A DNA stretch of 64,000 nucleotides from Vitrella brassicaformis CCMP3155. Lineage: Eukaryota; Protista; Chromerida. The notes under the pieces were generated by a model. The model searched no databases and had not been told where the DNA came from. It was given only the letters and a program-made list of their open reading frames with translations. Below, one piece after another: positions 6,960 to 58,666 of this stretch. Each line of letters starts with the position of its first letter. The first letter of the stretch is position 1. The DNA lies in NCBI GenBank assembly GCA_001179505.1, contig CDMY01000718.1, forward strand, positions 124,001-188,000, given 5' to 3'. The translations under genes were made by a program, and so were the position numbers.

Positions 6960-9895
6960 TCAGGGGAGGCCGTTCGCACACAAACATCAACAGACCGACG
7001 TCGTCAACAAAGACGCTCCTGGCTACTCTGGCCATTGATTCGGCCGGGCCCCCAGCCCAAGTCAATCCGTCCTCCCTGGCACATCTCCTAAGCCTGCTCA
7101 TCCCCGCTCATCTCATTCCCCATGATCCTTCTTTCCGCAGTCCCCCTCATCTTGTTTGTGTTGGTGCAGGGCGGCCGCCTCGTGCCACAACATGGCGGCC
7201 ATCTCCTGCACGCCGCCAGGCACGTGTACGGCAAGGCAATCGGAAGCCCTCTCGTCCACTCAAGCCGCCACCATCTGCGCATCCACTCGAGCAACGAGAC
7301 CGGCGTCTCGGCTGCTGTCAAGATGGAGGATTGGGTGAGGGAGAGTGCCGCAGTGCAGGCGCGCTTCATGGAGACGAGTCGGCGCTTCCATGCGCATAAG
7401 GTGCAGCCCTTCACAGCAATCAAGGAGCTGGGCAATGCAGCACTGGAGTCAGTTGACGAGGACTGGGCCATTGGGCAGGGATACGCCAACAAAGCCGGAG
7501 ACGGCAAGGCACTTCTCGCTGAGAGCAGTCTGCTAGAGGAGAAGGACCACTTCAACGTGGGGGATGAGGAGTATTGGGTCGCCTTCCAGTCTGCAGACGC
7601 CCACTCTGCGGCTCTGCGCAATTCTTTCACCCTCTTCTACCATGACAGGGACGTGCATGAAATCGCACTCAAGAAATGGTGAGACGCATGCACTGACACG
7701 GCTAAGTACTCATCTGTAGATGGCTTGGCTGCTCGATGCAGGTGGGAAGTGCAGAGGGATCAAGGAAAGGGCGAAGTGAAGGCTCACTTCAAGCGGAATG
7801 CCGCCGAGGCGAGAGAGGAGACAGGCATCTCGAAGGCAGAATTGGATGGCCTGCAGAAGAAGCAGTACGACGATAAGATGAACCGATGGTACAATAAGGC
7901 CCTCGGAGCTGTCAGCAACTTCACTAAGAAGGACCACGCCGATCACGATGAGAAAAGCCTGGCTTTTGCCGAAGCGCACATCGAATCGCTCATCGGCGTG
8001 TTCACCTTCGTCCTTCAAAAAGAGGCCATCAACGCCTACGAAAATGCGAATCCCCGAAGCATCGGCCCGCCCAAATTCACCGTGCCTCTGACAGGTGAAC
8101 AGGCCTAGCTTTTGCACGTGAGAGTGGAGCAAATGCGATCAAGAGCTGTGAATGTGTCAGACATTGCTCAAATGAGCCAAGGGCCCAACCAGGCCATGCT
8201 TACAGGTAAGACATGCACAAATTGGTCGATGGCTCATTAAAGAGTCAGGGAACATTGTGCTCTTCTGTAGGCTTCGCAGACATGCTCGTGCTCCTGCATT
8301 TGGCAGCGGTGAGCGGACGGAGACACGATACATGGCCTAGAAACAACGAGGGGCTGACCCTTTCTCTGCGTGTCTCGTCACATCAGAGTCGCTTCAACTG
8401 CGAGCCGGTCCACAAGAATGGGAGCCCCTCGGACAAGGATGTCACCCTGTGCATGGACAAGGGAGCCGACCACAACACCCTCTACACCATCAAGCGGCCA
8501 GACAACGCCACAGACACAAAGAGGCCGACCTTCCGACTGACATTTGTGATGGTCCGCAAGTTCAACAACGAGCCCCCATGCCATATCACATCACAGAACC
8601 ACCTGCCCGCTGACTACACGTGGCCGGAAGACCGCCTGAACATCGTCATGTGCGATAAGCACCTCAAGACATCCCCGAAGCCCCTTTTATTTCTCAAGAC
8701 TCAAGAGGGAAAACCCGTCTACAGACTGGCGACGAAGGATGGCCTGATGATGTATCCCAAGGTCCACGGTCTTGCAGAGAGCGTCGACCAGCTGCCCCCC
8801 GCCGACCAGTCACTGCTGAAACACGAGTGGGCTTTCTGTCCACTCTGCGATCTGCACATCCACCAGCAGGGTGCGGCGGCCCATGGTGGCAAGCCTGCAC
8901 ATCACAGCCTAATTCAGAGGGAGAGACGCGCGATTGTGCCGAGCCTTCATCACGGTAAAGAGACACAGTGAGACTACACGCCAATATCTCAGCATCTGCC
9001 CGTTCAGGTAACTCGTTCGGGCAGCTGTTGAGCATGACAGACGCACCCATAAGTACTCGGCAAACAAGATGGAGACACCACCAATATACATGGTCTATGT
9101 CGTTTTTGAGCAGAGTGCAAGGGGCACAGTGAGTGCGGCCCATCGCAAATGTGTCTCGCCATACCTGACAAAAAAGCCAAGACCTTCGATGCCAAGACGG
9201 CAGACTGGGAGCATTTCGACTGGTCCGGATTCCACCAGTGCTCACATCCCTCATCGTCGCCATGCTTCTGCCAACGTGAGCCGACGGCATCCGGGCTGTT
9301 TGACACATATGTGGCAGATGGGAGGAAAGTGACATCCGTGTGTGTGTGTGTGTGTGTGTCTGTGCTTGAGTGCAGGTGTACATCAGTGCAGCAAGGTGGC
9401 CTTGCCACTCATGGTTGGGTCGGAGGTTGATGACGACGGCGACAACTTTTGCGTCAGCGAAGTAAACGAAATAAACCCGACTACCAAGATGGCCAAGGTG
9501 CTTGAGTGCAAGCAGTGCCAGTATTCTGGCGGTCGCTACCCTGTTTGCGCAGCCCTGGTGAGCGGCTCATGCATCAGCCAGACCACCCAGTGAGTGTCTG
9601 TCTTGTGACATCGGTCCATCAGGGGGAGCAGTCATTAGGCACCCACTGGACGATCGAGGATGTGCCAGAGTCCGACCCCAAGAAGAGGGAGCTGTTTCAG
9701 TGGAGCAGCCGGGTGACAACACAGCGTGCTGTCGCTAAGGACGGCTGGTGGATGCCTTACCGTCTCCAGACACCGCCACAAGACCCCAACTCCCTAATGG
9801 CCTACCACCACCATCCTGATGCATTCATCGACTGCAAAAGTCCCATCCACCACCACCACCACCACCACCACAAGGGACACACACGCACAGCTTAG
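6960..9895 (+). CDS. Multi-exon hypothetical protein with a possible degenerate GHKL/MORC-like ATPase fold, a U1/matrin-like C2H2 finger and a C-terminal His tract
   Basis: ORFs 7122-7682, 7725-8108 and 8213-8971 join in frame via GT-AG introns (7679-7741, 8095-8270). Contains PFTAIKELGNAALES, CPLCDLHIHQQGAAAHGGKPAH (C-x2-C-x11-H-x5-H) and a terminal HHHHHHHH from a (CAC)n run. The gene is well supported; the domain calls are tentative and the start is uncertain. Confidence 0.6.
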
Positions 9896-29089: not shown

Positions 29090-32000
29090 GCGGATGAGAA
29101 TAAAGGCAGCGCCACATATGACACGTATCACCATGCACAGCACACACACAGGCAGCTGTGGACACGCACACGCGACAATGCAGCGAGTGGATCGTATGTA
29201 TCATGTATGTCTCGGAAAGAGGAGCCAGCAAGCAGCAGAAAGGAAACGCCCTCATCCCCCGGTGGGCCCATTCCCGGTGGGGTATGCAACCGCCCCACAT
29301 CGCACGCAGCAAATCTCTCGCTCGACCAAACAACCAGCAGCGCCATGGACCCAGAGGATGTCCCGCCATAAACGACGATCCGCCTGGCGAGGAGGCGATG
29401 CCCGTGAGCGCATCACCGCCTCGCTGCCTTTCGAAAAAGACCAAATATGTGTGTAATGTGTGTACGCAGATGCGCAGAATTAGCCAGACATCACAAATGC
29501 CGTATGCACACCTCATGTCGAGTGTGTCGACAGGGGGCTACGACTCAGAAATTATCCCCCTAACCATGACAACGGTACGCTACGTGTTCCTTCTCTCCCC
29601 CACTCCCCGCCACTCACCGCCGCCCACCGCCCCACGCACACAAAAATCAGCCGTACGTACTTTCGTGTCCCTTACGCACACATCTACATGCGCCTCGTCG
29701 TCCCTTAGGCAATACTGCACAATCACAAGACAAACCACACAACACAACACAACACAACCTGCCTGCCCGACAGCGACACGACACCACACGAGCCGACCGA
29801 CCGATGACGCATATTTGTTTAGGCACACACGTCCACACGTGTGAATCCTTGTGTGGTAAATCCTCCCTCCCCCAACCCCTCCATCCCTCTCTCCGTCGCC
29901 ACCACGCGCACACAACGGCACCATTCCCTCTCTCGTGTGCCGCCACACACCCACACACACACCCACGTAGCCCACACACATTCGCCCACAGTCACTGTTC
30001 TGCATACGGATCAGACTCGCTCAGAGAGGCAGCTTGAAAGTGTCTGGCCATGCATGCACTCCATCGAGCGGACACCAACATGCACCAGTCACGGGGACAA
30101 CTGTGTCCGGCAGCAGTCACCGAATCATGCAGTGTGTTTGTAGGTGTACGTACGTATGTATCCATGTATGTGAAGCACATGCCCTGCCCCCTTTGAAAGA
30201 CACCCACACACATGGACAGGCAAATACTGACACACGCAGAGCCCCATTGAGACGTCATACGTGTCAAGACCGACGAAATAAGCGTTGATGGGACAGTTGG
30301 CTTGTCTATCTCTCCTTCTCTCCCCGTGCAGCTACTGTCCGATACAAAAATGCATGTGCAACGCACGGATGTGTGTGTGTGTGTGTGTGGGGGGGGGGGG
30401 GGNNNNNNNNNNNNNNNNNNNNNNNNNNNNNNNNNNNNNNNNNNNNNNNNNNNNNNNNNNNNNNNNNNNNNNNNNNNNNNNNNNNNNNNNNNNNNNNNNN
30501 NNNNNNNNNNNNNNNNNNNNNNNNNNNNNNNNNNNNNNNNNNNNNNNNNNNNNNNNNNNNNNNNNNNNNNNNNNNNNNNNNNNNNNNNNNNNNNNNNNNN
30601 NNNNNNNNNNNNNNNNNNNNNNNNNNNNNNNNNNNNNNNNNNNNNNNNNNNNNNNNNNNNNNNNNNNNNNNNNNNNNNNNNNNNNNNNNNNNNNNNNNNN
30701 NNGGGGGGGGGGGGGGGGGCACCGACAAGACACACACAGGACACACGCACAACCCCCGCATGTACGTAACAAGATTCCACTGCAGGGCCACACTGCAACT
30801 GGATGAATAAAGACCAGATAATGGAAGCTCACCGCAGCCCCTGTCCCTCACGCAGCACGTCACGAATGTACGTTCGTACTGCGTTGTTCGGACAGACAGA
30901 CAGACAGACAGGCAGACCGACAGAGGAAACTAAGGCATTGCAGGCGGGTCTGTTACACAAGAAGGTAGTGATACGCACGAGCACTACACAGAAGAAGAGA
31001 GCGCCCCATCAAGACGTCATATGTGTAAAGACCGACGACATATGCACCTCTGCTGATTGTGATTGGACAGTTGGTTGGCTCGTCTATCTCTCTCTCTCCC
31101 CTCCATCCAGCCACCATCAGAGATGAACGAATGAATGAACGCATGTGAGCACCGACGAGACACACATATGCCCACCCAAGACACCCCCCCGGCATGGCCG
31201 CACTGCCGCTGGATGAAGAAAAACCAGATCATGGAAGCACCGCAGCAACCGTTCATCACGCAGCACCCCACAAATGTACCTTCTTACTGAGCTGATCAGA
31301 CAGATAGACAGAGGACAGACAGACAGACAGACGAAAGAAAGACAGATATACAGACAGGCCGACAGGCAGACAATGAGGTTGGATTACACACCTGCCAGCA
31401 TACATACCATCCCTGTAAGTCAACAAATATGTGCGCCCTCTGACGGACAACATGTACTAGACAGAACACACACGCGACCAACAGCCGACCTCTGAAAGGC
31501 ACCCGACGGCAATGGCTGCTCACACGGTGTATGTATGATGTGTGAGGCTCCTGCGTGGCGTCTCACTCACACGAGCCGTCACGCAGCCAGGCCCACCCCC
31601 ACTTCCGCTCTCCACACACCACACCACACACACTCACACTCCACATCAACGCATAGGAATACCACAGAGAGCTAGTCGACACGGATTTTGTAGCACCTAA
31701 TCTACTTACTCACGTCACAGCAGCCTGGCCTGATACCACACGAGCGACCAAGGGCTCACACTCTTCGCGAATGAGAGTCCTTGGGCGGCCGTGTGTCGTG
31801 GGAAAAAACACACCACCAACACGCTCCGTGAAGAAAAACCAGCCAGTCATGACTACACGTATTACACATCCATACACGCATATGCTCAACGCATGCAGGT
31901 GAGACAAAGAGAACTCACTTCCCGCTGCTCGCCATGGTGCGCTCTCAATTGCTCGTGAGTATCTGCATACGCACACGCCCACACACACAGGCAAGGCGGC

Positions 32001-33011: not shown

Positions 33012-36000
33012 CTAGTCGCTGTCTTCGTCCAGCCGCCAGTTCTTCTTGAAGACCTTGTCGGCGTCGAGATGAGGTTCATGGTCATCCTCGTACAGGTCTG
33101 CAACCAATGACAGGACAGCAGAGCGGCTCCATTTGTCGGTGCTCACGCTCCATTTGTCGGTGCTCACACGGGTTCCTTACTTGGGGGGTTACGTGGTGGA
33201 TGCAAGCCCAGGCCACCGAGGGGGAACCAATCCGCCGCATAGCCGCCCTCGCCCATAGCCTGGACGACACAATGAAAGCGCCCGATACACGGCCGCTGTG
33301 TAAACGTGGTTCATCAATTGCTACCTCACTGACCGGTAAGTGCTGGGTGTCGTCCGCCGGCCAAGAGGACAGTGGCGGCCGTGGCGGCAGTGGCGATGGA
33401 GCAGAGACGTGCGACGGCTGAATGAGAAACACGCGCACCATTTTTGTCGATGGCAAATGTGCCTTTGCTGGGAGGCTTGCCTGTGAGGCGCTATGTCCTT
33501 GTGCGTTGCCGCTCAGTGGCTGCTGATAGCGACGAGCTCTGAAGGGAGACCAGACAAGAACACAGGCACAGTGGTGTGGTGTGGATGTGGTGTGGCTGCT
33601 TCGCCTCACCGGTGCTGCCGATGGTGGGGAGGCAGCAGAGGGCTGTCGAACTCGCCGCCCGACGGCTCTCCCTGGACAACGAAGGACAGGGGAAATGGCA
33701 ATGAATGCATCCTTCCTGTCCCATTCATCCTTCGCGTGTGCTGTCACCGTGCTCTCAGCAGCAGAGGGGTGGTGCAGTGGTGGGGCGAGGGACATGCCTG
33801 CAAACAAGACCAATCATGAGACCACTCAGGCGGCCTGGATGGCGACAATGGCAGCCTCCATCTCTGTGTGCACCCATACCTCCATCTCTGTGTGCCTTCA
33901 TACCCGCAACCGCAGCTGCAGCTGCCCCAGGACCCTGCAAACACGACACAAGGGAATGCGACAAATGCCGGTGTGATGGTGGACGGCTGTACGCCCGCCA
34001 ATTCCCTCACTGACAGGTGGGAGGTGGGGGCTCTGTGCGGGCATCATGGGCTGACCGCCATCTGCAGACAGCACCCAGTACAGAAAGCATCCAGATGCCG
34101 TATTTGCGCGTCTTGTGTGGGGTGAGGTGACCTGACCTTGGCTGGCAGGGGCACGCAACGTCGACAGCATTTGGTATCTGATGATGGCGTCTTCAAACGC
34201 CGCCTCCACCCCTGAGTCGCCGCGGGACAGATCCACGTCCACACGCACAGCAAGATCATTGACCAGCCGCATGTCCACCCCGTTGTAGTTGATTCCGAAA
34301 AGACCCGGCCGCACAACAAACCACAGCTCCTCTCGGTCAGCAGCCGTATCCACGGATACGCCTGGGTGGCCCTCCCGCAGACTGTTCGCATAGCCGACAA
34401 GATCGGCGAACGACGAAGGCGGGCGCTGAAAGACAAATGCGTTTGTCCGCATCCCTGTGTGAGCACGTGTGCGTGTGCGTCACTCATACCTCCTGTGCCC
34501 TCGGCGTCTTGCGAGGTAGTGCCTGGCTCGCGCGTCTCTGTCGCACCTGGCTGTCATGGGATGGGGGGCATGCTGGCCCACTGTGGGTCCATCCTGATCA
34601 AAGCACAGACCAGTGCACATGGTGTCGTCAGGGGCATGACAGGTGTCTCGGCATCGCACCAGGCATGTCAGCTGCACGTTGCCGCTCCTGCTGGTGGTAG
34701 TAGTAGTGGTGGCTCTGCTGCTGCTGTGGCGAAGCTGGAGCATGGGGAGTGGGACGAACAGGGTGCCACATCCACAACACAAGCAGGGAATCGGAGGTTC
34801 ACGGCTTTCTCTGCGTGAAGCTCACTCACCATGAGGATAATGGGCGGTTCTCTGTGGTTGGACGGTCGACATCTGGGGGGTCATCATGGCAGCACCTGCA
34901 TCAAGAAGATTGCAATGAATGAATGTGCTGGCGCGTGTGCAGTCGAATTCAGCGGCCGACCTGCTTGTGGGGTGGAGAGTCTGGGCGTCTGTGCGCTGGG
35001 TGTAGGATAATCCTGGCCGTACTCACTGTGTGCAGCAGCCGCAGCTCCAACAACAGGTGGGCTCTGCGGAGACACGGCCATGGACTTTGTTTCCCTCCCT
35101 GTGTTTGCTCCCCCCTACCTGCTGGTACGCCACCATGAATTCGTCAATCCACTCGTCGCTCGCGTCGAAGTCGTTCAGCCCCGGCACCTGACTAGCGATC
35201 TGCAACGCCGTGGCCCTGATGGCCTCCCTGTTCACCGCCATTGGAGGCGTGTAGTCCCTCAGCTGCCTCTCGAGTTCCGCAATCCAGCTGTCCTGTTGTG
35301 TGGGCCCTGCTGGCTCATCGCCGTACCCCGGCCGATGAATCCATCCGCTATCTCCTCGTCATGCGGTTGCTGTGGAGCAGGAGCAGTCTCCTGGCAAGTG
35401 CCGGGGGATGAAGATGCGTTGGGTTGTAGGGCTGGGGGGAGGGTGAGGGATATCGGCAGAGGGTGGGGATGAGGTGGATGCGTCGGGAGAGGGGAATGGG
35501 GAGCAGCACCAGCAGCGGCAGGAGGGGAACCTACAGAGCAATCAGACCGCACACCCAGATTACCATGCGCACACAAATATTACGAAGTAGGTGGGGGACG
35601 CCTTACCCATGACGGCACGGACTTGCGGATGCGGCACAGCCGGCTGGTGGGCGGTCATAGAAGGTGGCGGAGCAACACCGTATCGACGCGCCTTGGAGCG
35701 CTTCCGCTGAGAGGCGCGGAAGAGCAACAAAACATCCGTCAGCACGCAGGCACACACATGACGTATCTATGGGCGCACCGACATGCTCACCTTGACACGG
35801 TTGCTGGCTTGGTTCTGCCCATCCTCACCACTCCTGGCCGACTTGGCAGCGCGCCCCTGCAGAAATGAAACTGCACAGAGTGTCTGCTGCACGTATGCGC
35901 TATGCCCTGTGGTGCATCTCGGTGTCGTGCCTGGGTGTCGCTAATAGTGACGGTGCTGTCGGCTGTCCTTTTGTGGGGCCTCGCTGCAGGGGCAGGCAAC

Positions 36001-47205: not shown

Positions 47206-48825
47206 TCACGCATGGCTGATAGGTATCTCTGCCCCCGTCGCCATGTCACGGATCTTCCTCAGCCTGACCTGCGCCCAGTTGAAGACGATGTACTCATCTC
47301 CAGTGGGCATGCCCGTCAGATGCACCGAGTCGTATCCTTGTGCTTTGAGGCTCGTGTGGGTGTACTGGCCGGCCCCCAAGAGGGCGGAAATCTTGAGGCT
47401 GTTGCCCAGGTACACTCGCGCCTCGATCATGCAGCCTGGACTGTGAGCCTTGCCCATGGTGGCCTGTTCGGACGCCGCACTGACGAGACACATCGACACA
47501 GGCGCAGATGAGACGGAGACAGCTGATGGTGACTGTATGGTTTCCGTGGTTTCGTCTGCTTACAAGTAGATGCCGCCCCCAACGATGCCCGTCGATCCCC
47601 GCATCATCTTCCGGCCCGAGGCGATGGCCTGAGCGGAGGCCGCGGATGTCTGATGGTAGAGTGTGATGCCCTTGGGGCACTCGGTGGCCCAGTGGTCGCT
47701 GTCCTTGTCTCCACACAGACGGCAGTAGTGCTTGTGCGCTTTCTTGCAGCCCTTGACACGACATTGCACCGTGCAGTTCCTGGTCAGGTGGTCGTTGATC
47801 TTGCCGCACCGTCGGCACTTGTGTTGGGAGTGGTCGATGCGGCAGCCTCGGACGCCGCACGACTGGCGACGGGGCGACGGGGAGCGGCGGCGGTGGCGAG
47901 GCGAATCACCGCCCTGCTGCTGGTGCTGCTGCCCCGATATGCAGAGGTTGTTGAAGAGCATGGCTGCGGCCAGCACACGCGGGTCACACACATGGGCGGC
48001 CTGAACGGGACATTCAAATCCACGGTGAGAGGCGGAGGAAGTGCCTGCAGTGGTGGTGCGTACCGGAGCTGCATTGGTGTTCTGGCTGGTCTGCTGATTG
48101 GTGTTCTGATCGGCCGTCTGGTCGGTGTTGTCCTGCTGGCCAGCTCCCGTGGCGGGCGCAGGGGCTGGCGGAGGCGGCTGCATCATTGACGTCAGCAGCT
48201 GTGTCGCAAGCAGCTGGAACAACACACACCATCGGCCAGCCTTCGCATCCACTGAGTGCATGCGCATGTGCGTACCTGCATTATCAGGGGCTGCATCATC
48301 GGGTTGGCGCCACCCGGGGAGCCAGACGAGCAGCCAGACGACCGACGAGACCTGCGGGACGATGTAGCCTGACAGCCACACACAACAGACAGCAGCACCA
48401 GCCATCAATGCATTGAATGCGGCCTTCCCATCCCCCCGTACCGTGCTATCGTCCGATTCGTTGCCGTCATCATCACTTCCGCCCGAGTCAGCGGCCGATC
48501 GCGCCCGACTCGACGAGGCCTTCCGCAGCTTGGGGCATGCAGACGAATAGTGATCAGAGTCCTGCACACAGACAAACACACAGAGAGGCGGTCGCGTCGC
48601 ATCATCGGCCTTGGTTCATGTCGGCACAGGACCGCGTCGCCGCAGGTTTTGCAGTAGTGCTTGCCCGTCTTCTGGCAGTTGGGGTGAGTGCAGGAAGGGA
48701 TCCTGCAGCCGCCGGAGCGACTCGGAGCCTGACAGACAGAGAAGGACGCAGATCAAGCAGCGAAGAAGATGTGTCCAGGATGCGCGAGCTGTCCGTCATG
48801 AGCCAATCTTCCACACCTGCGACAT
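47206..48825 (-). CDS. Triple zinc-module + GIG2/PARP-like ADP-ribosyltransferase ART-c
   Basis: Module 1: CRIPSCTHPNCQKTGKHYCKTCGDA|DSDHYSSACP. Low-complexity S/Q/P linker. Module 2: CGVRGCRIDHSQHKCRRCGKINDHLTRNC. Module 3: CRVKGCKKAHKHYCRLCGDKDSDHWATECP. ART domain: LYHQTS...GIVGGGIY|FA...QGYDSVHL...GDEYIVFNWAQV. The start (MSQ|AP.. at 48825) is a hand prediction. Confidence 0.85.
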
Positions 48826-49155: not shown

Positions 49156-52100
49156 ATGACCTGCCGCGTCCCTGGCTGCAAGGAGGCTCACAAGGCCCAC
49201 TATTGCAAATGGTGCAAGAACCAGAACTCCAACCACTTCGCGCGTGACTGCTGGCATGGGCCCGGTGGACAGAGCGCGTCGACATACTCGGTACGCAGGC
49301 GACAGGATAGACAGACAGCGCCCTCAATGCCGTTCCCTCTTTCCTGCATGTGTTGTCTGCAGGGTGGCTCACCCGACAAGAGCCCACAGCGCAGCACATC
49401 ACGCGCCAGGGAGCGCAGCCGTTCAGGGCAGCCGAAGGGCCGCGTTGGTTGCCGCGTTCCAGGGTGCACTTTCCCCAACTGCCTCAAGACGGGACACCAC
49501 CATTGCAAGAATTGTGGCGACAAGGTAGCTACCAAGGACGCCCCATGGTGCTGATTCATCTGTTCCTTTGCCTGTGTTTGGCCTGGCCGCAGGATTCCGA
49601 TCACTTCTCGTCGGCATGCCCCAAGCTGCAGAAGCCCGGCGGGCAATACACGACCACCTCGCGCTTGGTGAGTGGCCATAATGCTAGAGGGCCTCGTTGC
49701 AGGACTGCATTTGGTGTGTCTGACGATGCTGTTTCGTTTCAGGTGCATTCGTCGCACCTCCTGTCGTCGCTCTATAACGGTTCACCTCACGCCGTCAAGA
49801 CAATCCTCGCCAACTATGCGACGGATTATGGGCGCGCAAAGGAGCCCAAGGACGTCACCGGTCTGCTGAGCACGCTGCAGTCGGCCATGGGCGGCCGAGG
49901 GGGCAGCTTCCATGGCATGGAGAGGGTGCTGACCTCTACCTTCATCAACGAGACGCTGCCCGTCCTGTGCGGCATCCTCTCCAAGGGCGACCTCAGCTTC
50001 CCCCTACAGCCGCCATCCAGCCACTCACACAGCGGCACGGAGGCACACATGACTGCCCGCCAGTGCTTTGCCCTCATCGGTGCGGGCTTCCTCTGTCTGC
50101 ACCAGCCCGGCGACGGCAGTCTCAACTTCGACCGCCTGTTCGACAACAGCACACCCTCTGGCAAGGCCAAGCTGCAGTGCTTCATCCACTACCTGGACAC
50201 CATGGCGCGGGCGATCAAGGAGGGCAACACCGCCGAGACGGAGCGTGTGGTCGTGTTCCAAGCCCTCAGCAGCCCCGAGGCGGGTATCCACGACTGGGCG
50301 ACATCGACCGCCCCACTGGTGGATGTGCGCTTCGTGCAAGGCACCCAAGCGTCCATCTTCGACGCGCCGGCCATCCGAGGCGACTTCGCCAATGCCCACA
50401 TCGCCGGCGGAACACTGGGAAAGGGTACGCACACAAAGACGAGAGACAGACAGGTTGATGTGCATCGATTTACATTTGTCTTTGCCGTCTCCGTCTCTCT
50501 CTCTCTCTCTCTGTGTGTGTGTCTGTGTGTCTGTGCCTGTTTGTGTGTGTGTGTGTCAGGTGCGGTGCAGGAGGAGATCTTGTTCTCAATTGAGCCGGAG
50601 TGCCTTCTCGCCCGCCACCTCTTCCCCAGAGCCATGCAGCCCACTGAGGCCTTCATGATCGTCGGCTCCAAGACGTTCAGCAAAACATCTGGCTACGGCC
50701 GCGAGACCCTCCGCTTCAGCGGCCCTGCCCACGACACGGCGGCCACGAGGCGCGTCGATGGCCATCCGGTTCTGAACAAGTACATCGTGGCCTTTGATGC
50801 GGTCAACTTCGGCAAGCACGGGAGTGATCAGCAGTACGACAAGACGCATGTGGTGCGAGATCTCAAGAAGGCACACACGGCATTCCATTGCAATGGCCTC
50901 ACGATCGTCGGAGGACTGCCCTTCGCGACGGGTGAGTGAGGCACACACAGATGGCCATCGTGTCTTGTCTGCACATCTGCGTCGGTTCGTGTGTCTGCGT
51001 GTGTCTGTCCAGGCAATTGGGGCTGTGGCGTGTTTGGTGGCGACCCCCAGTGGAAGCTTCTCATCCAGTGGTGCGCTGCGAGTCTCGCCGGCCGCCCGCT
51101 GCACTACTACCCGCGAGACGAGCGCAGCCTTATGGGCGCCGAGCGCTTCATCCACAGCCTGAAGGCCGCTGGGTGCGACACTGTGGGCGGGCTGGTCCAG
51201 CTGATGTGTGACAGGCGCACACAGAGGGCCATCGCGGGGCGGAATCGAATGTCGGCATTCGAGGCCATCAAAGCGATCGTCACGGACCGGAGCAGACCAC
51301 CCCCACCACCCGTGGTAAGCTGCCCCTCCATACTGTCTGCATCAATCTCATTGGGTTTCTGTGCGTTTGTGTGCCAGCCTCGCAGCTCACTGCCTGCATC
51401 CCACATGCAGCACTACTCCCCTTCCCCCCCCATGCAGCACTACTCGCCCCAGCTCGCATTGCCGGACCGGGCGGCAGCGCCACCTACGACAGGCCGAGAG
51501 GAAAGCCAAGGCGACACGGTGAGCCGTCTGCCAAACCTGAGATCCTGTGGTCATGCCTGTCTGTCTGTCCCCAGGCAGCCCTCGCTGCGTCTCCCATGTT
51601 GTCGGCCGTCACTGCAGACGAAAAGCATGCAAAAGATGACAATCCAAGAGAGGTCCGTCGAGACATGACACACACTTCTATGTGACCGATTGGTGTGTGT
51701 TGTGCGATGCTCTGGCTGCCAGGTTGGCTACGCTCCTCTGGTCGACACGACCGACAACGAGTCGTCGAGCATGGGTGCCTCGGATAGCGACGACAAAATG
51801 GACGTCGACGCGAGTGACGCGACCAACGCGGGCGCCACGGTGGAGGAGACCACACCCCTCCTCTCCATGCAAGACACGACCAGCCACACGTAAGGAGCAT
51901 GCACAGAGCCCATAGACGTGTGGTCAAGGCGTAGGTCTGGCTTCTCTGCGTGTCGTATGTTGTCAGAATTCATTACGTGTTCGAGTACGTGCCGAGGATG
52001 TATACCTTCCCCTCTGAGGTGGTACTCAAAGGCTCCTTCGACGGCTGGCTTGGCCATCACCCGATGTCTTGGTCGCCCAAGCACAGGTGCTTCGTCTACG

Positions 52101-52279
52101 GCATGCCGCTGCCCCCGGGCAGGTACATGTACAAGTTCATCGTGGATGACAGGTGGGTGTGTTCCAGCACGCAGCCAACAGGCGAAGATGGAGCTGGCAA
52201 TACCAACAATGTCGTCACCATCTCACTTGACCGCCAATGTCTGACCTGCGGGGTGGTACATGGGGGGAGGGGGTGCTAG
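49156..52279 (+). CDS. PARG: Poly(ADP-ribose) glycohydrolase PARG-1: 2 zinc modules + PARG catalytic domain + C-terminal CBM48/AMPK-beta-like glucan-binding domain
   Basis: MTCRVPGCKEAHKAHYCKWCKNQNSNHFARDCW; CRVPGCTFPNCLKTGHHHCKNCGDK|DSDHFSSACP. PARG signatures DFANAHIAGGTLGK|GAVQEEILF, SGYG, RDLKKA, AT|GNWGCGVFGGD. Final exon from 51967: SEVVLKGSFDGW...LPPGRYMYKFIVDDRW...NTNNVV. Confidence 0.92.
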
Positions 52280-52825
52280 GCGGGATGGCCTGTGTGCGGA
52301 TCGTAGCATGGGATCAGTTTGGATTCGTCGAATTGGGCTGGGAGACGTGCTGGCTGGGGGGTGCAGTGTGAAATCAGTGATGGCTCCGTAGGTGCGTGAG
52401 GATGGGCGGGTTCTTGTAACTAGATGGGCGAGCAGAGAGCGGGAGAAGAGGACGAACGGCATCAAATGTGACATGGCTGCTGTGCGTATCGTAGTGTGGG
52501 ATCAGTCGTAGAGTCGTAGATAGATGAGGGCGGATTCTCACAGGCAGTCGGTGCCCTCTGCGTTTTTTCTACGAGACACTTTGGTTAAATCCATGTTCGT
52601 GTGTGTCCCATGCATGGGCTGTGTCGTGTGATTTTGAATTGAAGTACGCGTAGTTTGACGCACTCTGAGTCTGTGCTTTTTGTAAGGCCCTTTGACTTGT
52701 GCATGTGAGGCTTTTCCATTAAGAGTGACGGCGAGCAGCGGACTAGACATCGAAAGTGAGCGCAACACAAAAGCGGCCGCATCAAGAATATATACATCAA
52801 TTCCTCCACCCGAACAGAGACACGC

Positions 52826-52979
52826 AGCATCAATCAAGTCACACGACCGTCAGCACCTCCACGTCACTGGCACTAAAATCTCGATGGCCACCGAACACTG
52901 CACACGCAGCAGGCCCCCTCGCCCCTTGATAGCCATCAGGCACATGACTCCTCTTCATGAAGTGACGACAGTAGCGCAC
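52826..52979 (-). pseudogene. 3' remnant of the TLDc gene (duplicate of 57668-57821)
   Basis: Near-identical DNA to the end of the TLDc CDS (VPDGYQGARGPAACAVFGGHRDFSASDVEVLTVV). The rest of the domain is absent. Confidence 0.8.
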
Positions 52980-53139
52980 TCCTGTTGATAATGGACCAGT
53001 GTATAGGTGTTTATGGCGTGTATACAGACTTGACATAAGACACTGATGTCTTTCCCTGACCGGTCCAAAGGCACAGAAACCTATCTTCTTGACTTCTCTG
53101 CACGCCTCATTGTCCACTTGCCTCCTTGCACCAAAACTT

Positions 53140-54141
53140 CTAGACGAAAAAGCTCATAAACACGCGCCCGATGAAGCCCAGAAGCTTGATGCAGCCAGGG
53201 AGCACGACCTCTGGGATGAGCTGCACAAACACAATCCCGACAACGAAGTCGAGAATCAAGATCTCGATGAATAAGTCGAAGATCAACATCTCGATGATCA
53301 CCTCGAGAATCACGCGCTCGACAAAGAACTCGAGCAGCACGCGCTGGACAAAGAATTTGCCGAGCTGCACGACGCCCTCCGTGACGGGGCGCGGTAGTCG
53401 TGTAGTGCCAACAAAGAAGATGAGACTCCTACAACACACACACAACACACACACACACACACACAAACATGACAGGCAGGATTTGACACTTGTTTGGTTG
53501 GCTGTCTGCTGCATTGGTCACTTGAATGCCGCGACTCCTCTCGGGGCCAATTCGCCTGCCTTTCCATGGAGAAATCGGTATAAGAGGCGAATCCTCTTGA
53601 TTAGGCGGGTTTCGCCGCGGTCGTCCTTGCAATCTCGATCATAAGCCTGACGCTTCTTGCTGTCTTTCAGTAGCTACACACCACGCACACAATCAATGCA
53701 CACCGCCACACACGCATGGCGTTGCTCACTTCGTATGCGGTGCGAAGGTCAATGAATTTCTCGTGCGCTCTTGGGTCACCGGGGTTCTTGTCGGGATGCA
53801 CTTGCTTGGACTTCTCGAAATACCCCTGCCATGATGACACAGACAGATAGACAGAAGATAGACCACACACCAAGAGGACTGACTGACTGACTGACCTGCT
53901 TCAGCTCTGCATCCGTGGCGTCCCTCGGCACCCCAAGAATGCGATAGCAGGAACAGGCGTTTCGACAGCCTCCTTGACCCAATGCAGGCGCCACTAGCAG
54001 GAGCGATAGCACAGAGAACAGACTCCGAAGAGAGCTGCATGCACACACATTGGTGCCTCGCGCGAAGCCTCAGGCGCCTGGGCAAGCGAGTCATACGTAC
54101 CTCGGACACTTGGACAAAAACGGCGTTGTATCACACGTCAT
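53140..54141 (-). CDS. J-domain (DnaJ/Hsp40) protein with N-terminal signal/anchor and hydrophobic C-terminus
   Basis: Spliced MTCDTTPFLSKCPS|SLRSLFSVLSLLLVAPALG...CYRILGVPRDATDAELKQ|GYFEKSKQVHPDKNPGDPRAHEKFIDLRTAYE|LLKDSKKRQAYD. HPD motif present. Confidence 0.88.
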
Positions 54142-54847
54142 TCGTTCGCTGCGCTGACAAACACGCAATCCGCTCTCCGATGCAGTACAGGTGTTTGTGT
54201 TGCAGTGCTACTGCAGTGTTGCAGTGATGCACACACAAGCAGGGGAAGAGAGAAATCGTCTCCTGGCGGGGAGCCCCTTTTGGGCCCGTGTATCGTGCAT
54301 ACCTGCCACATTGACGATACCGCTGCTTCCTGAACGCCGAGGAATGGGGGGTATCCAGAAAAGAACTGCAAGCTCGCAGATCTGAAGGGGGGGGGATGAG
54401 GGAGAGAAACCGCTGATGCTGAAGGGAGAGAACGAACGATGTCAAAACGTTGTGTTGCTGCGCCTTGTTTGCACCCTTGTTTGCAGACCCTTGGATCCTC
54501 AAAGATCTGCGCTGTGTTCGGCTCTTCAGAGGTCAAAGGCAGAGTATCGCTTCGATTGTGTCCAAGACGACACAAAGGCCAGCAGGCAACGAGAAGCAGT
54601 GACACATTCGCCGGGGATCCGATGCTCTCGAGGATAGGACAAGCCGACAGGATGCCACAGGAATACGGATCACAGGAATACATTGACAGGTATATGCCTG
54701 TTGCCTGTTCTGGTGCATTTCCTCAGCTGCTGAGCCGTCTTGGTCCGCTCGCCATCTCCCGCGCTTCATTCTTTGGTCCGCGAAGCGAAGAGAGCGAGAA
54801 GAAGCACAGAGGACCATACTTCCTGATCTGCCGTGCAAAACACAGCC

Positions 54848-57286
54848 ATGGTGAGAGCGACCCTACCAGCGTCCAGCGATCGGATTGCACCCCTCCACTC
54901 ATGTCTTGTCCCATCGTCCGTGTGTGCAGTGGTGGCTTGGCAAGACTTGCCGCGTCCCTGGCTGCACGGAGAAGCACAAGGCGCACTTCTGCAAATGGTG
55001 CAAGAACCAGAACTCCAACCACTTCGCGCGTGACTGCTGGTATGGGCCCGGTGGGAAAATGGCAGCGAACAACAAGCACTCGGTAAGCGAACGCACTCGC
55101 AGACCTACACCGCATTACTATGTGAGTCATGCCGCTCTACGTGTTGCCTCCCATGTACGCTGTAGGCTTTGCCTCGCCAGTCGCCGGCCCATCACGGCTT
55201 ACCTGCCACCGTCAAGGCCATCCTCGCTCACCTCGCGACGGATCACGGCCGCGCCAAAGAGCCCAAGGACGTCATTCGTCTGCTGGGCTGGCTGCAGTCG
55301 GCCATGGGCGGCCAGGGGATCTCATCGACCAGCTTCCGTGGCGTGGAGAAGGTACTGACCTCCACCTTTATCAACGAGACGCTGCCCGTCCTGTGCGACG
55401 TCCTGTCCAAGAGCGACCTCAGCTTCCCCCTGCAGCCGCCATCCAGCCACTCACACAGCGGCACGGAGGCACACATGACTGCCCGCGAGTGCTTCGTCCT
55501 CATCGGTGCGGGATTCCTCTGTCTGCACAAGCACGGCCACTCGGGCAGCCTCAACTTCGACCGCCCCTTCGACAACCACACACCGTCTGGCAAGGCCAAG
55601 CTGCAGTGCTTCATCCACTACCTGGACACCATGGCGCGGGCAATCAAGGAGGGCAACACCGCCGAGACAGAGCGTATGGTCATCTTCCGAGCCCTGCATA
55701 GCCCTGCGGCGGGGCTTCAGGAGTGGGCGAGGTCGACAACCCCTCTGATGGACGTGCACTTGATGAATGGGAAGGATGCGTCCATCTTCGACTCGAAGGG
55801 CATCAGGGGCGACCTTGCCAATGCCCACATCGGTGGCGGGACGCTGGGAAATGGTACGCAGACACAAACAGGCACAGACACGCACTGATCCATGTGGACC
55901 TGTCTGTGCCTTGCTGCGTCTGTGTGAGTATTTCAGGTGCGGTGCAGGAAGAGATTTTGTTTTCCATCGAGCCGGAGTGCCTCGTCGCCCGCCACCTCTT
56001 CCCCAGAGCCATGCAGCCCACAGAGGCCTTCATGATCGTCGGCTCCAAGACGTTCAGCCGCACATCGGGATACGGCCGCGAGACCCTGCGCTTCGCCGGC
56101 TCGGCACACGACACCGCCACCATGAAACATACCAACGGCCATTCCGTCCTGGGCAAGACCGTTGTGGCCTTTGATGCGGTCAACTTCGGCAAGCACGGGG
56201 GCGATCAGCAGTACGACGAGAGGTGCGTGCTGCGGGAGCTTAACAAGGCACACACGGCATTCCATTGCAATGGCCTCACGATCGTCGGAGGACTGCCCTT
56301 CGCGACGGGTGAGTGAGGCACACACAGAATGGCCATCGCTTCTTGTCTGCACACCTGCGTCGATTCGTGTGTCTGCGTGTGTGTCTGTCCAGGCAATTGG
56401 GGCTGCGGTGTGTTTGGTGGCGATCCCCAGTGGAAGTTTCTTATCCAGTGGTGCGCTGCCAGTCGGGCGGGTCGACGGCTGCACTACTACCCAAGAGACG
56501 AGAAGAGCCTCGTGGGCTCCAAGAACTTCATGCACGACCTGAAGAACGCTGGGTGCTCCACGGTGGGCCATTTGGTGCAGCTGATGTGCGATGGGCGCAC
56601 ACGTGGGGCGATCGGGCGTCGCGTGTCGGCCTTCGATGCCATCAGAGGAGCCCTCGCACAACAAACCAGACCAGCCTCTCGACAGATGGTACACCTACCA
56701 CCCTGCACACCTGTCGCCGTGTATCACCGTGGATGCTTTGGTGTGCGTGTGTGTGTGTGTCGCAGTCCCACAGTCTACCCCCCCGCAGGCAGCAGCCACG
56801 CAAACGCACACTGAGCAACTCGCCGCCAGCGCCACCCACGAGACGACACCACGGTGGGATAATCGACACCAACAAAGCGGAAGCCAAGGAAAGGGAGACG
56901 ACACTGCTCGCGTCTGCACAGAAGAGTGGCGACAGCAAGTAAGCACCCACAGAGACGCACACACCGCAGAGAGGGGAGCGAACGGATCCTGGCCGTGTCT
57001 GTGTGCCTATGGTGGTGGTGTCAGGATCGATCACATTTTCCAGTACGTACCGGTGAAGCGCACTCGTCCCTCTGAGGTGTTGCTGGCCGGATCCTTCGAC
57101 GGCTGGCACGGCCGCTACCCGATGTTCTGGTCTGCCGAGCACAACTCCTTCGTGCTGCCCATGCCGCTGCCTGCCGGCAGACACATGTACAAGTTCATCG
57201 TCGATGGCGTCTGGACGTGTGCGGGCCGGCAGCCAAGTGCTCGAGATTCGTCTAACAATCTCAACAATGTGGTGAACGTCGGATAG
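54848..57286 (+). CDS. PARG: Poly(ADP-ribose) glycohydrolase PARG-2: 1 zinc module + PARG catalytic domain + C-terminal CBM48-like domain
   Basis: M|WWLGKTCRVPGCTEKHKAHFCKWCKNQNSNHFARDCW; DLANAHIGGGTLGN|GAVQEEILF (GGG-x6-QEE); SGYG; RELNKA; GNWGCGVFGGD. Last exon from 57025: SEVLLAGSFDGW...LPAGRHMYKFIVDGVW...NLNNVVNVG*. Confidence 0.92.
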
Positions 57287-57671: not shown

Positions 57672-58666
57672 TCAATCAAGTCCCACGACCGTCAGCACCT
57701 CCACGTCACTGGCACTAAAATCTCGATGGCCACCGAACACTGCACACGCAGCAGGCCCCCTCGCCCCTTGATAGCCATCAGGCACATAACTCATCTCGAT
57801 GAAGTGCCGGCAGTAGCGCACGCAAGAATTCCCGCCGTCACGGCCCAAGCTTAGATCACTGATCGTCAGCGCTCCCGTGCCCTCGGGCGCCTCTATCCCA
57901 GCGACGCGCACGGTCTGCCCGCCGGGAATGCGAATCTTCATTGGGGCTTCGAAGTGGCCGGCGAGCGAGAAATGCCACCCGTCAGATTCGTATTCGCTGA
58001 CTCCCGTTGGATCCTGCGGCAACTTGATGCCTTCACTTGTATAGGCGCCGAACACGCAGCCGCCCGATTTGATGACGAGCACCAGCCCCTTAGCGTCGCC
58101 CACACACCGAATGAGGTCGAGGTATTGGCCGCCGTCAGTTCTGCAGCATGGCACACACTCGAACAGCAGATCAGAACAGAGCAGTCAGGTGTGTGTTCTC
58201 TGTTGTACGCGTATATGTACCTTCTGTCGTAGGAGGAGTGCCTATAGAGCCGCTTGAGCTCTCTGCCGTTCAGCCAGCTGCGAAGGGTATCGCGCTGCTC
58301 GTCTGTCAGGAACGACACAACGGCAGCGGCCTGCGGTACGGCCTTCCTCCGGACTCCACCACGAGCCCGCAGCTGCTTGACGATGCCACCGATATTTTCG
58401 GCCGTGGCCAGCATATTGCTCAATGTTTCCAATGCTGCTTCAGCAAAATCTAATGCAACCGAGATCATCTCCGCGACTTCCTCAACGATGCGCCGTCTTG
58501 TCGCGCCAGTCACCTTGTTGCGCGACCTTCTCATGATGAGCCGGCTGGGCAGCAGAGGGGCACAATGCTGGCTGTGTTGGGGATGGGCAAGGAACGCCAA
58601 CGCTGCGGTCGATGAGGCCAGCAGAGGGATAATGATGATCAGTGACGCCACGACGGATGGACTCAT
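57672..58666 (-). CDS. TLDc-domain protein with N-terminal hydrophobic segment and helical region
   Basis: FLTDEQRDTLRSWL...LKRLYR, DLIRCVGDAKGLVLVIKSGGCVFGAYTSEG, HFSLAGHF and VFGG..DFSASDVEVL follow the TLDc motif order. Start uncertain. Confidence 0.8.

Follow-up and report, generated by a model that had tools for sequence, protein, structure and literature searches.

What is a starch- or glycogen-binding module doing at the end of an enzyme that removes ADP-ribose? The question is raised by a 64-kb stretch of contig CDMY01000718.1 of Vitrella brassicaformis CCMP3155 (the window, meaning the whole stretch of DNA analysed, to whose positions coordinates refer unless stated otherwise), which carries two PARG genes on its plus strand. 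In both of them, here called copy 1 (P0001) and copy 2 (P0003), the last exon encodes a CBM48 domain of the AMPK-beta type. A preliminary description of the window, made from its letters, had proposed that the CBM48 is fused to PARG in both duplicates, and the analysis reported here makes such a fusion near certain overall, although the evidence differs between the two copies. The positions of all features are collected in Table 1.

For copy 2 the fusion exists as a spliced product. Two sequencing runs, X1 and X2, are RNA-like, with ∼40% of the sampled words of 51200-57199 present and with GT..AG skips, and of the six introns in the P0003 model the contigs built from them reproduce five (54849>54929, 55081>55165, 55852>55936, 56307>56392, and 56687>56765). 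One X2 contig that joins 56398-56687 to 56765-56939 continues as ATCGATCACA, which is the start of the CBM exon, and a piece of a second X2 contig starts precisely at 57025. In X1, a 639-nt contig contains the last PARG exon and the linker exon followed by 325 more letters. Additionally, the MMETSP de novo open reading frame (ORF) Transcript_29407 matches P0003 over its full 648 residues with no difference. The RNA contig joints and the identical transcriptome ORF thus demonstrate the fusion in copy 2, for which an artefact of the gene model was rejected.

In copy 1 the fusion is supported by the public gene model, by the exon phases and by the resemblance that both linker and CBM bear to those of the paralog P0005. 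Read from the DNA, the phases are compatible at all junctions of both copies. The last PARG exon of copy 1 ends in phase 0 at 51314 with a GTAAG donor, and its third linker exon ends in phase 2 at 51889, the third base of the split codon coming from the CBM exon at 51967. The junctions of copy 2 are laid out alike (56688, then 56766-56938, then 57025). The acceptor AG lies at 51965-51966 in copy 1 and at 57023-57024 in copy 2, and the stop codons are at 52277-52279 and 57284-57286, so that the terminal exons are confirmed at the positions first proposed for them, 51967-52279 and 57025-57286. The joined proteins used throughout are those of the public gene models rather than our own exon joins.

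An error of annotation, in which the CBM exon would be a separate gene downstream of PARG, is an extremely unlikely source of the fusion. The idea could draw on the lack of RNA contig cover over the copy 1 junctions and on a paralogous locus that is split in the public annotation, where P0002 (484 aa) stops within the PARG macro domain and AMPK1_CBM has a model of its own, of 248 aa, 200 bp further on. However, P0002 lacks the last PARG exon, which makes the split the likelier error: a tblastn search of this locus (L001:6001-9008; CDMY01000718.1, 239662-242669) located the missing PARG exon at 7768-8175 and the CBM exon at 8739-8996, in the usual order, and P0002 and the 248-aa model are most likely one gene with a split annotation. 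The RNA contigs of copy 2, in which PARG exons are connected through the linker to the CBM exon, and the identical 648-aa ORF also oppose the artefact, as do the fitting phases and the absence of an in-frame ATG before the first beta-strand in either CBM exon.

Three other joints (51618>51730, 51758>51975, and 53896>56741) have sides of 20-29 letters and come from DNA-like runs, and were taken as repeat or microsatellite artefacts. Microsatellites of the GT/CA type in introns (53877-53896, 56741-56761, and 53429-53475) break or falsely join contigs in all runs, and many of the introns in these genes consist of (TG)n or (TC)n runs. The match of one X1 contig ends exactly at 52279, the last base of the copy 1 stop codon, and is followed by 255 unrelated letters. 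These could come from a paralog or a chimera, or from an intron of the 3' untranslated region whose donor is not GT.

The catalytic domain of both copies is PARG. In Pfam searches with exon-level ORFs the two copies reached 101 and 99 bits for PARG_cat_C, where the cut-off is 26.3, and 37 and 35 bits for PARG_cat_N, where it is 25.6. The E-values in copy 1 are 5e-9 for PARG_cat_N and 8e-29 and 1.7e-14 for PARG_cat_C, and DSPc had no Pfam match. Solved PARG structures match this domain with E-values from 7e-39 (8adj) to 1e-29. The catalytic loop of P0003, GGGTLGNGAVQEE, aligns with GGGVLGHGCVQEE of 8adj with both glutamates kept (GGG-X6-8-QEE), and 13 PARGs show no variation at Q285, E286, and E287, whilst the loop of copy 1, AGGTLGKGAVQEE, has Ala for the first Gly (AGG for GGG). 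The diphosphate-binding loop, GNWGCGxFGGD, reads ATGNWGCGVFGGD in both copies, and G406-G411, F413, and D416 are likewise invariant across the 13 PARGs. As all catalytic signatures are kept, the domain most likely hydrolyses (poly)ADP-ribose.

The last exons match PF16561 (AMPK1_CBM) with 71.0 bits (E 1e-19) in copy 1 and 68.9 bits (E 4.4e-19) in copy 2, against a cut-off of 26.8, well past anything that chance would give, and a six-frame scan with the CBM profile found no further CBM48 in the 64-kb window. The motifs by which the domain had originally been recognized, GSFDGW, YKFIVD..W, and NNVV, are found in both terminal exons. The domain is nearest to the AMPK-beta type, with an E-value of 4e-12 to the CBM of AMPK beta2, compared with 1e-5 to 6e-5 to those of LSF1 and SEX4, which are detectable relatives. 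Residues W589, K618, W625, and N642 of P0003 align with W100, K126, W133, and N150 of rat AMPK-beta1, and are invariant (W34, K63, W70, and N87 in domain numbering) in all five Vitrella CBMs. These four residues are reported to be the critical carbohydrate contacts of AMPK-beta (PMC4032982), in which the substitutions W100G and K126Q abolish glycogen binding (PMC6274970). Since the four sugar-contact residues are kept, the Vitrella CBM would be expected to bind alpha-glucan.

Compared with AMPK-beta, the loop that follows the first Trp has two additional residues, and it contains an extra invariant Trp-Ser pair (W42 and S43). Residue S598 of P0003 (window ∼57130) aligns with S108 of AMPK-beta, a regulatory autophosphorylation site. 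None of the five CBMs departs from Ser here, and the residue before it is an invariant Trp specific to the family. This may hint at phospho-regulation or at an enlarged binding platform.

Structural modelling is consistent with the sequence assignment. The AF2 model of the CBM domain is all-beta with a pLDDT of 82.9, and its best Foldseek matches are 4yee, 1z0m, and 4yef (TM 0.89-0.93, root mean square deviation 1.4-1.5 Å), all of them cyclodextrin-bound AMPK CBMs; the Atlas model of the domain compares with AMPK1_CBM clusters at TM 0.80-0.88. The full-length AF2 model is confident in the PARG core and in the CBM, and linker residues 500-545 are mostly below a pLDDT of 50, which would fit a flexible tether. 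No match to AMPKBI (PF04739) was found, the proteins ending 0-17 residues past the CBM, and for want of that domain the PARG-CBM48 proteins are not kinase beta subunits.

Retention of the CBM48 in both duplicates, as had been stated for the window, extends to a wider subfamily of zinc-module PARGs, of which five of the six members (P0001, P0003, P0005, P0250, and the L001 locus) have the domain. Members are found both in tandem and dispersed along one 287-kb contig. P0005 (CEM31300.1; 699 aa, PARG and CBM48) is also on contig CDMY01000718.1, and P0250 (CEL95779.1; 831 aa, with two zinc modules, PARG, and CBM48) is on another contig and more divergent, its CBM scoring 40.3 bits. Vitrella has at least nine PARG genes, three more of which (P0010, P0127, and P0251) encode neither zinc module nor CBM. 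Identity to the CBM of P0003 is 44-68% within the family, and pairwise dN/dS values of the CBMs are 0.30-0.52. The linkers between PARG and CBM, of 50-130 residues, are disordered and unconserved, and can no longer be aligned. The sixth member, P0004, has a model of 878 aa that seems to be merged with an unrelated N-terminal region, and a 66-71% identical copy of its residues 1-94 lies at window 34959-35283 on the minus strand.

Two sequences considered as extra members of the fusion family, P0125 (MMETSP Transcript_21124) and P0249 (JGI, 798 aa), were rejected as chimeric transcript assemblies that switch from P0250 to P0003. Their sequence is that of P0250 as far as the conserved stretch ...EPECLVARHLFPR (or a piece that contains an intron), and from there on that of P0003. 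As chimeras they indicate that P0250 and P0003 are both expressed.

The architecture is apparently specific to Vitrella. PF16561 was present in only three proteins, all from Vitrella, among the best 120 of 621 word-index matches to PARG. An exhaustive phmmer search of 1.84 billion representatives gave 4179 matches, the best 150 of which were scanned with the CBM profile, and among the 248 proteins fetched in all (mainly PARG search matches) the only ones with both CBM and PARG were six Vitrella proteins or transcript assemblies traced to Vitrella. Inspection covered the best part of each match list, from which a fusion with a weak PARG (below ∼90 bits) could escape. A word-index search with the CBM region of P0003, for which 30 candidates were scored, returned the query alone and is uninformative on relatives. 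The ESM Atlas contains no cluster with both families, and a whole-protein feature search there produced no usable match. None of the best 80 metagenomic CBM48 loci (≤53% identity) has a PARG within 6 kb.

No paper was found in the literature searched that joins PARG or ADP-ribosylation with CBM48 or with chromerids, and PARG is unmentioned in a preprint on myzozoan starch metabolism (bioRxiv 10.64898/2026.09.25.754361). The earlier statement that no described PARG-CBM48 fusion was known thus holds within this scope, the literature searched and the non-Vitrella proteins among the 248 fetched. The public gene models with their automatic Pfam annotation do already show both domains; the architecture is undescribed rather than undiscovered.

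Taken together, we favor a reading, to which we would give a probability of roughly 0.55, in which the two genes are tandem members of a Vitrella-specific PARG subfamily built from one or more zinc modules, a PARG domain, a disordered and fast-diverging linker and, in the last exon, a C-terminal CBM48. The CBM48 would bind alpha-1,4-glucan and act as a flexible tether, concentrating the ADP-ribose eraser on the cytosolic starch around the Vitrella pyrenoid, where the tethered PARG would remove ADP-ribose from granule-associated proteins. The marks might be written by the putatively ART-like zinc-module genes that lie head to head with several family members. Vitrella has amylose-containing starch in the cytosol, wrapped tightly around the pyrenoid (bioRxiv 10.64898/2026.09.25.754361; PMC6668581), and at the N-termini of the proteins the zinc module comes first, a hydrophobic leader, signal or transit peptide being absent. 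Targeting to starch is plausible because the starch of Vitrella is cytosolic, the proteins lack a signal peptide and the sugar-binding residues are kept, and for this mechanism taken by itself we see the odds as about even. The broader proposal of the preliminary description, targeting to storage granules or a link to energy state, is likewise no more than plausible.

Several observations speak against this interpretation or limit it. At the P0004 locus (L002:6001-11718, same contig) the 6 kb downstream contain neither a CBM exon nor an assembly gap, so the CBM is dispensable in at least one member of the subfamily. The dN/dS values of the CBMs, at 0.3-0.5, indicate moderate constraint only, and L146 of AMPK-beta, which also takes part in cyclodextrin binding, is replaced here by Ser or Ala. 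The linker of copy 2 contains a basic stretch, PRRQQPRKR, that could be a nuclear signal, which would speak against starch targeting of this copy. More generally, some CBM48s are mainly regulatory or protein-contact modules, and AMPK1_CBM is also found fused to non-carbohydrate proteins such as the TROVE proteins of giant viruses. Lastly, the junctions of copy 1 are absent from the X1 and X2 contigs, in which this copy is weakly covered.

There are other explanations of the role of the CBM48. It may be a regulatory or sensor module instead of a tether, with glucan, oligosaccharide, or an intramolecular or protein contact, comparable to the way in which the CBM of AMPK-beta docks onto the kinase lobe, switching PARG and so coupling de-ADP-ribosylation to carbon and energy status. 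Such a role would suit a domain of the AMPK-beta rather than the SEX4/LSF type, with its invariant Ser at the S108 position, and it has a precedent in AMPK, whose kinase is inhibited when the CBM binds glycogen (PMC6274970). The long, disordered and unconserved linker, however, is typical of tethers and would be awkward for a fixed allosteric interface, and the AMPKBI scaffold domain of AMPK has no match here. We therefore consider a sensor unlikely, if still worth keeping in mind. A ligand other than glucan is another thought, as poly(ADP-ribose) is itself a ribose-ribose glycosidic polymer, and a CBM48 re-purposed to bind it, or some other non-glucan ligand, might raise the affinity or processivity of PARG. 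The WWE reader modules (PF02825) on the PARGs P0013 and P0037 offer a precedent for a substrate-binding accessory domain, and the extra W42 and S43 in the lengthened loop could be read in the same way, but we know of no CBM48 that binds poly(ADP-ribose), the conserved residues are exactly the alpha-glucan contact set, and nothing in the data indicates binding of poly(ADP-ribose), which makes this explanation very improbable.

A different kind of explanation looks to the family as a whole, which might be a fast-evolving writer-eraser system of ADP-ribosylation for conflict or defence, in which the CBM is just one among several targeting modules that are interchangeable, with no dedicated role in starch metabolism. 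The number of PARG genes in Vitrella, their tandem and dispersed arrangement, the zinc-module genes head to head with members and the relaxed dN/dS all agree with this; yet one and the same CBM is retained, its binding residues included, in five of the six members, and a conflict system would be compatible with starch targeting rather than a full alternative to it. As the reason for the CBM we find it doubtful. We are just as doubtful of a more far-reaching version of the favored reading, a reversible cycle of ADP-ribosylation on the cytosolic starch granules of Vitrella, in which putative zinc-module mini-ARTs would write and CBM48-tethered PARGs erase. The targets of such a cycle would be enzymes bound to the granules or even the glucan, and it would regulate the build-up and breakdown of starch, in likeness to the reversible phosphorylation of glucan in plants (GWD and SEX4).

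The PARG-CBM48 proteins can be compared with several known systems. With canonical PARGs (PF20811 and PF05028; 8adj, 4a0d, and 3uek) the Vitrella proteins share the helical and macro-fold domains, the catalytic loop and the diphosphate loop, and to these they add their private N-terminal zinc modules and the C-terminal CBM48, whereas the accessory domains on other PARGs fetched are WWE and AKAP-like regions. The CBM of the AMPK/SNF1 beta subunits (PF16561; 1z0m, 1z0n, 4yee, and 4yef) is closest both by sequence and by structure, with the four contact residues in common, but the Vitrella CBM is located at the C-terminal end of a hydrolase, without AMPKBI/ASC, and differs in the replaced L146 and the longer loop. 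Other fusions of AMPK1_CBM, to starch synthase GT5, sucrose-phosphate phosphatase, alpha-amylase and giant-virus TROVE, show the same promiscuous module with varied partners, none of which belongs to ADP-ribosylation signalling.

A design like that proposed here is found in the glucan phosphatases, namely SEX4 and LSF (dual-specificity phosphatase with CBM48) and laforin (CBM20 with dual-specificity phosphatase), in which an enzyme that removes a modification is likewise combined with a module that binds starch or glycogen and takes the enzyme to the granule. Catalysis in the Vitrella proteins would, however, be by the PARG macro fold and not by a dual-specificity phosphatase, and whilst the CBM of SEX4 packs tightly on its catalytic domain, a long disordered linker separates the two in Vitrella. 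The resemblance is an analogy of mechanism and design, not membership.

Poly(ADP-ribose) is removed mainly by PARG, an enzyme whose known biology is almost entirely that of DNA damage, chromatin and stress granules. The seemingly intact module for starch or glycogen binding in this PARG family suggests that signalling by ADP-ribosylation may also operate at a carbohydrate store, and to our knowledge no link between the two has been described. The removal of ADP-ribose would thereby join the short list of designs that combine an eraser with a CBM, a list made up until now of glucan phosphatases. The reach of this suggestion is limited in that the architecture seemingly occurs in one genus only, the models with both Pfam domains are already public, and function is inferred throughout.

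Table 1. Coordinates of the two PARG-CBM48 genes, their parts and the neighboring genes in the 64-kb window.
Feature	Position	Strand	Description and evidence
Copy 1, CEM31363.1 / P0001, PARG-CBM48	49156..52279	+	808 aa, 10 coding exons; public model mapped exon by exon; locus L004
Copy 1, N-terminal exons	49156..49670	+	Two Cys/His zinc modules (CRVPGC...H..C..C......H....C); sequence reading
Copy 1, PARG catalytic exons	49746..51314	+	Helical domain and macro fold, AGG-x7-QEE and GNWGCGVFGGD; Pfam, exon map
Copy 1, linker	51378..51889	+	Exons 51378-51518, 51575-51655 and 51723-51889, all short; Pro/Ser-rich at first, acidic after that; P0001 exon map, splice sites and phases from sequence
Copy 1, last exon	51967..52279	+	AMPK-beta-type CBM48 (W732, K761, W768, N785), 17-aa tail and stop; Pfam, alignment, phase-2 junction
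Copy 2, CEM31365.1 / P0003, PARG-CBM48	54848..57286	+	648 aa, 7 coding exons; called gene in L004, exon map
Copy 2, zinc-module exon	54930..55082	+	One zinc module; sequence reading, flanking RNA joints 54849>54929 and 55081>55165
Copy 2, PARG catalytic exons	55166..56688	+	GGG-x7-QEE and GNWGCGVFGGD; Pfam, 8adj alignment, RNA joints 55852>55936 and 56307>56392
Copy 2, linker exon	56766..56938	+	Basic and Pro-rich, modelled disordered; RNA joint 56687>56765 (runs X1 and X2)
Copy 2, last exon	57025..57286	+	AMPK-beta-type CBM48 (W589, K618, W625, N642) and stop; Pfam, RNA contigs, AF2 model
Neighbor of copy 1, head to head	47206..48825	-	392-aa model, zinc module in common; called gene in L004, no Pfam match
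DnaJ gene between the two PARG copies	53140-54141	-	Called gene
Weak TLD-domain gene downstream of copy 2	57672-58414	-	

The zinc module, C-x-V-x-GC-x3-5-H-x3-4-C-x2-C-x7-H-x5-C, is common to the PARGs and to the head-to-head neighbor of copy 1, and it has no match to a Pfam family. In a tblastn search the N-terminus of P0001 matched 47614-47862 and 48520-48746 on the minus strand, within the neighbor gene. Zinc-module genes are placed head to head upstream of copy 1, of the P0002 locus and of P0005, and the DnaJ gene occupies this place at copy 2. An ART domain in the neighbor (exons within 47206-48576) was not confirmed, single-exon searches of Pfam and PDB being without match. A metagenomic protein of 636 aa, P0130, from a 2058-bp JGI contig, combines two or more zinc modules with a PARG and has no CBM, and its layout indicates that zinc-module PARGs exist beyond the sequenced strain.

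The window also contains an assembly gap of 300 N at 30403-30702. The DnaJ gene is transcribed, as five CT..AC joints from 53220 to 54303 were observed in both X1 and X2.

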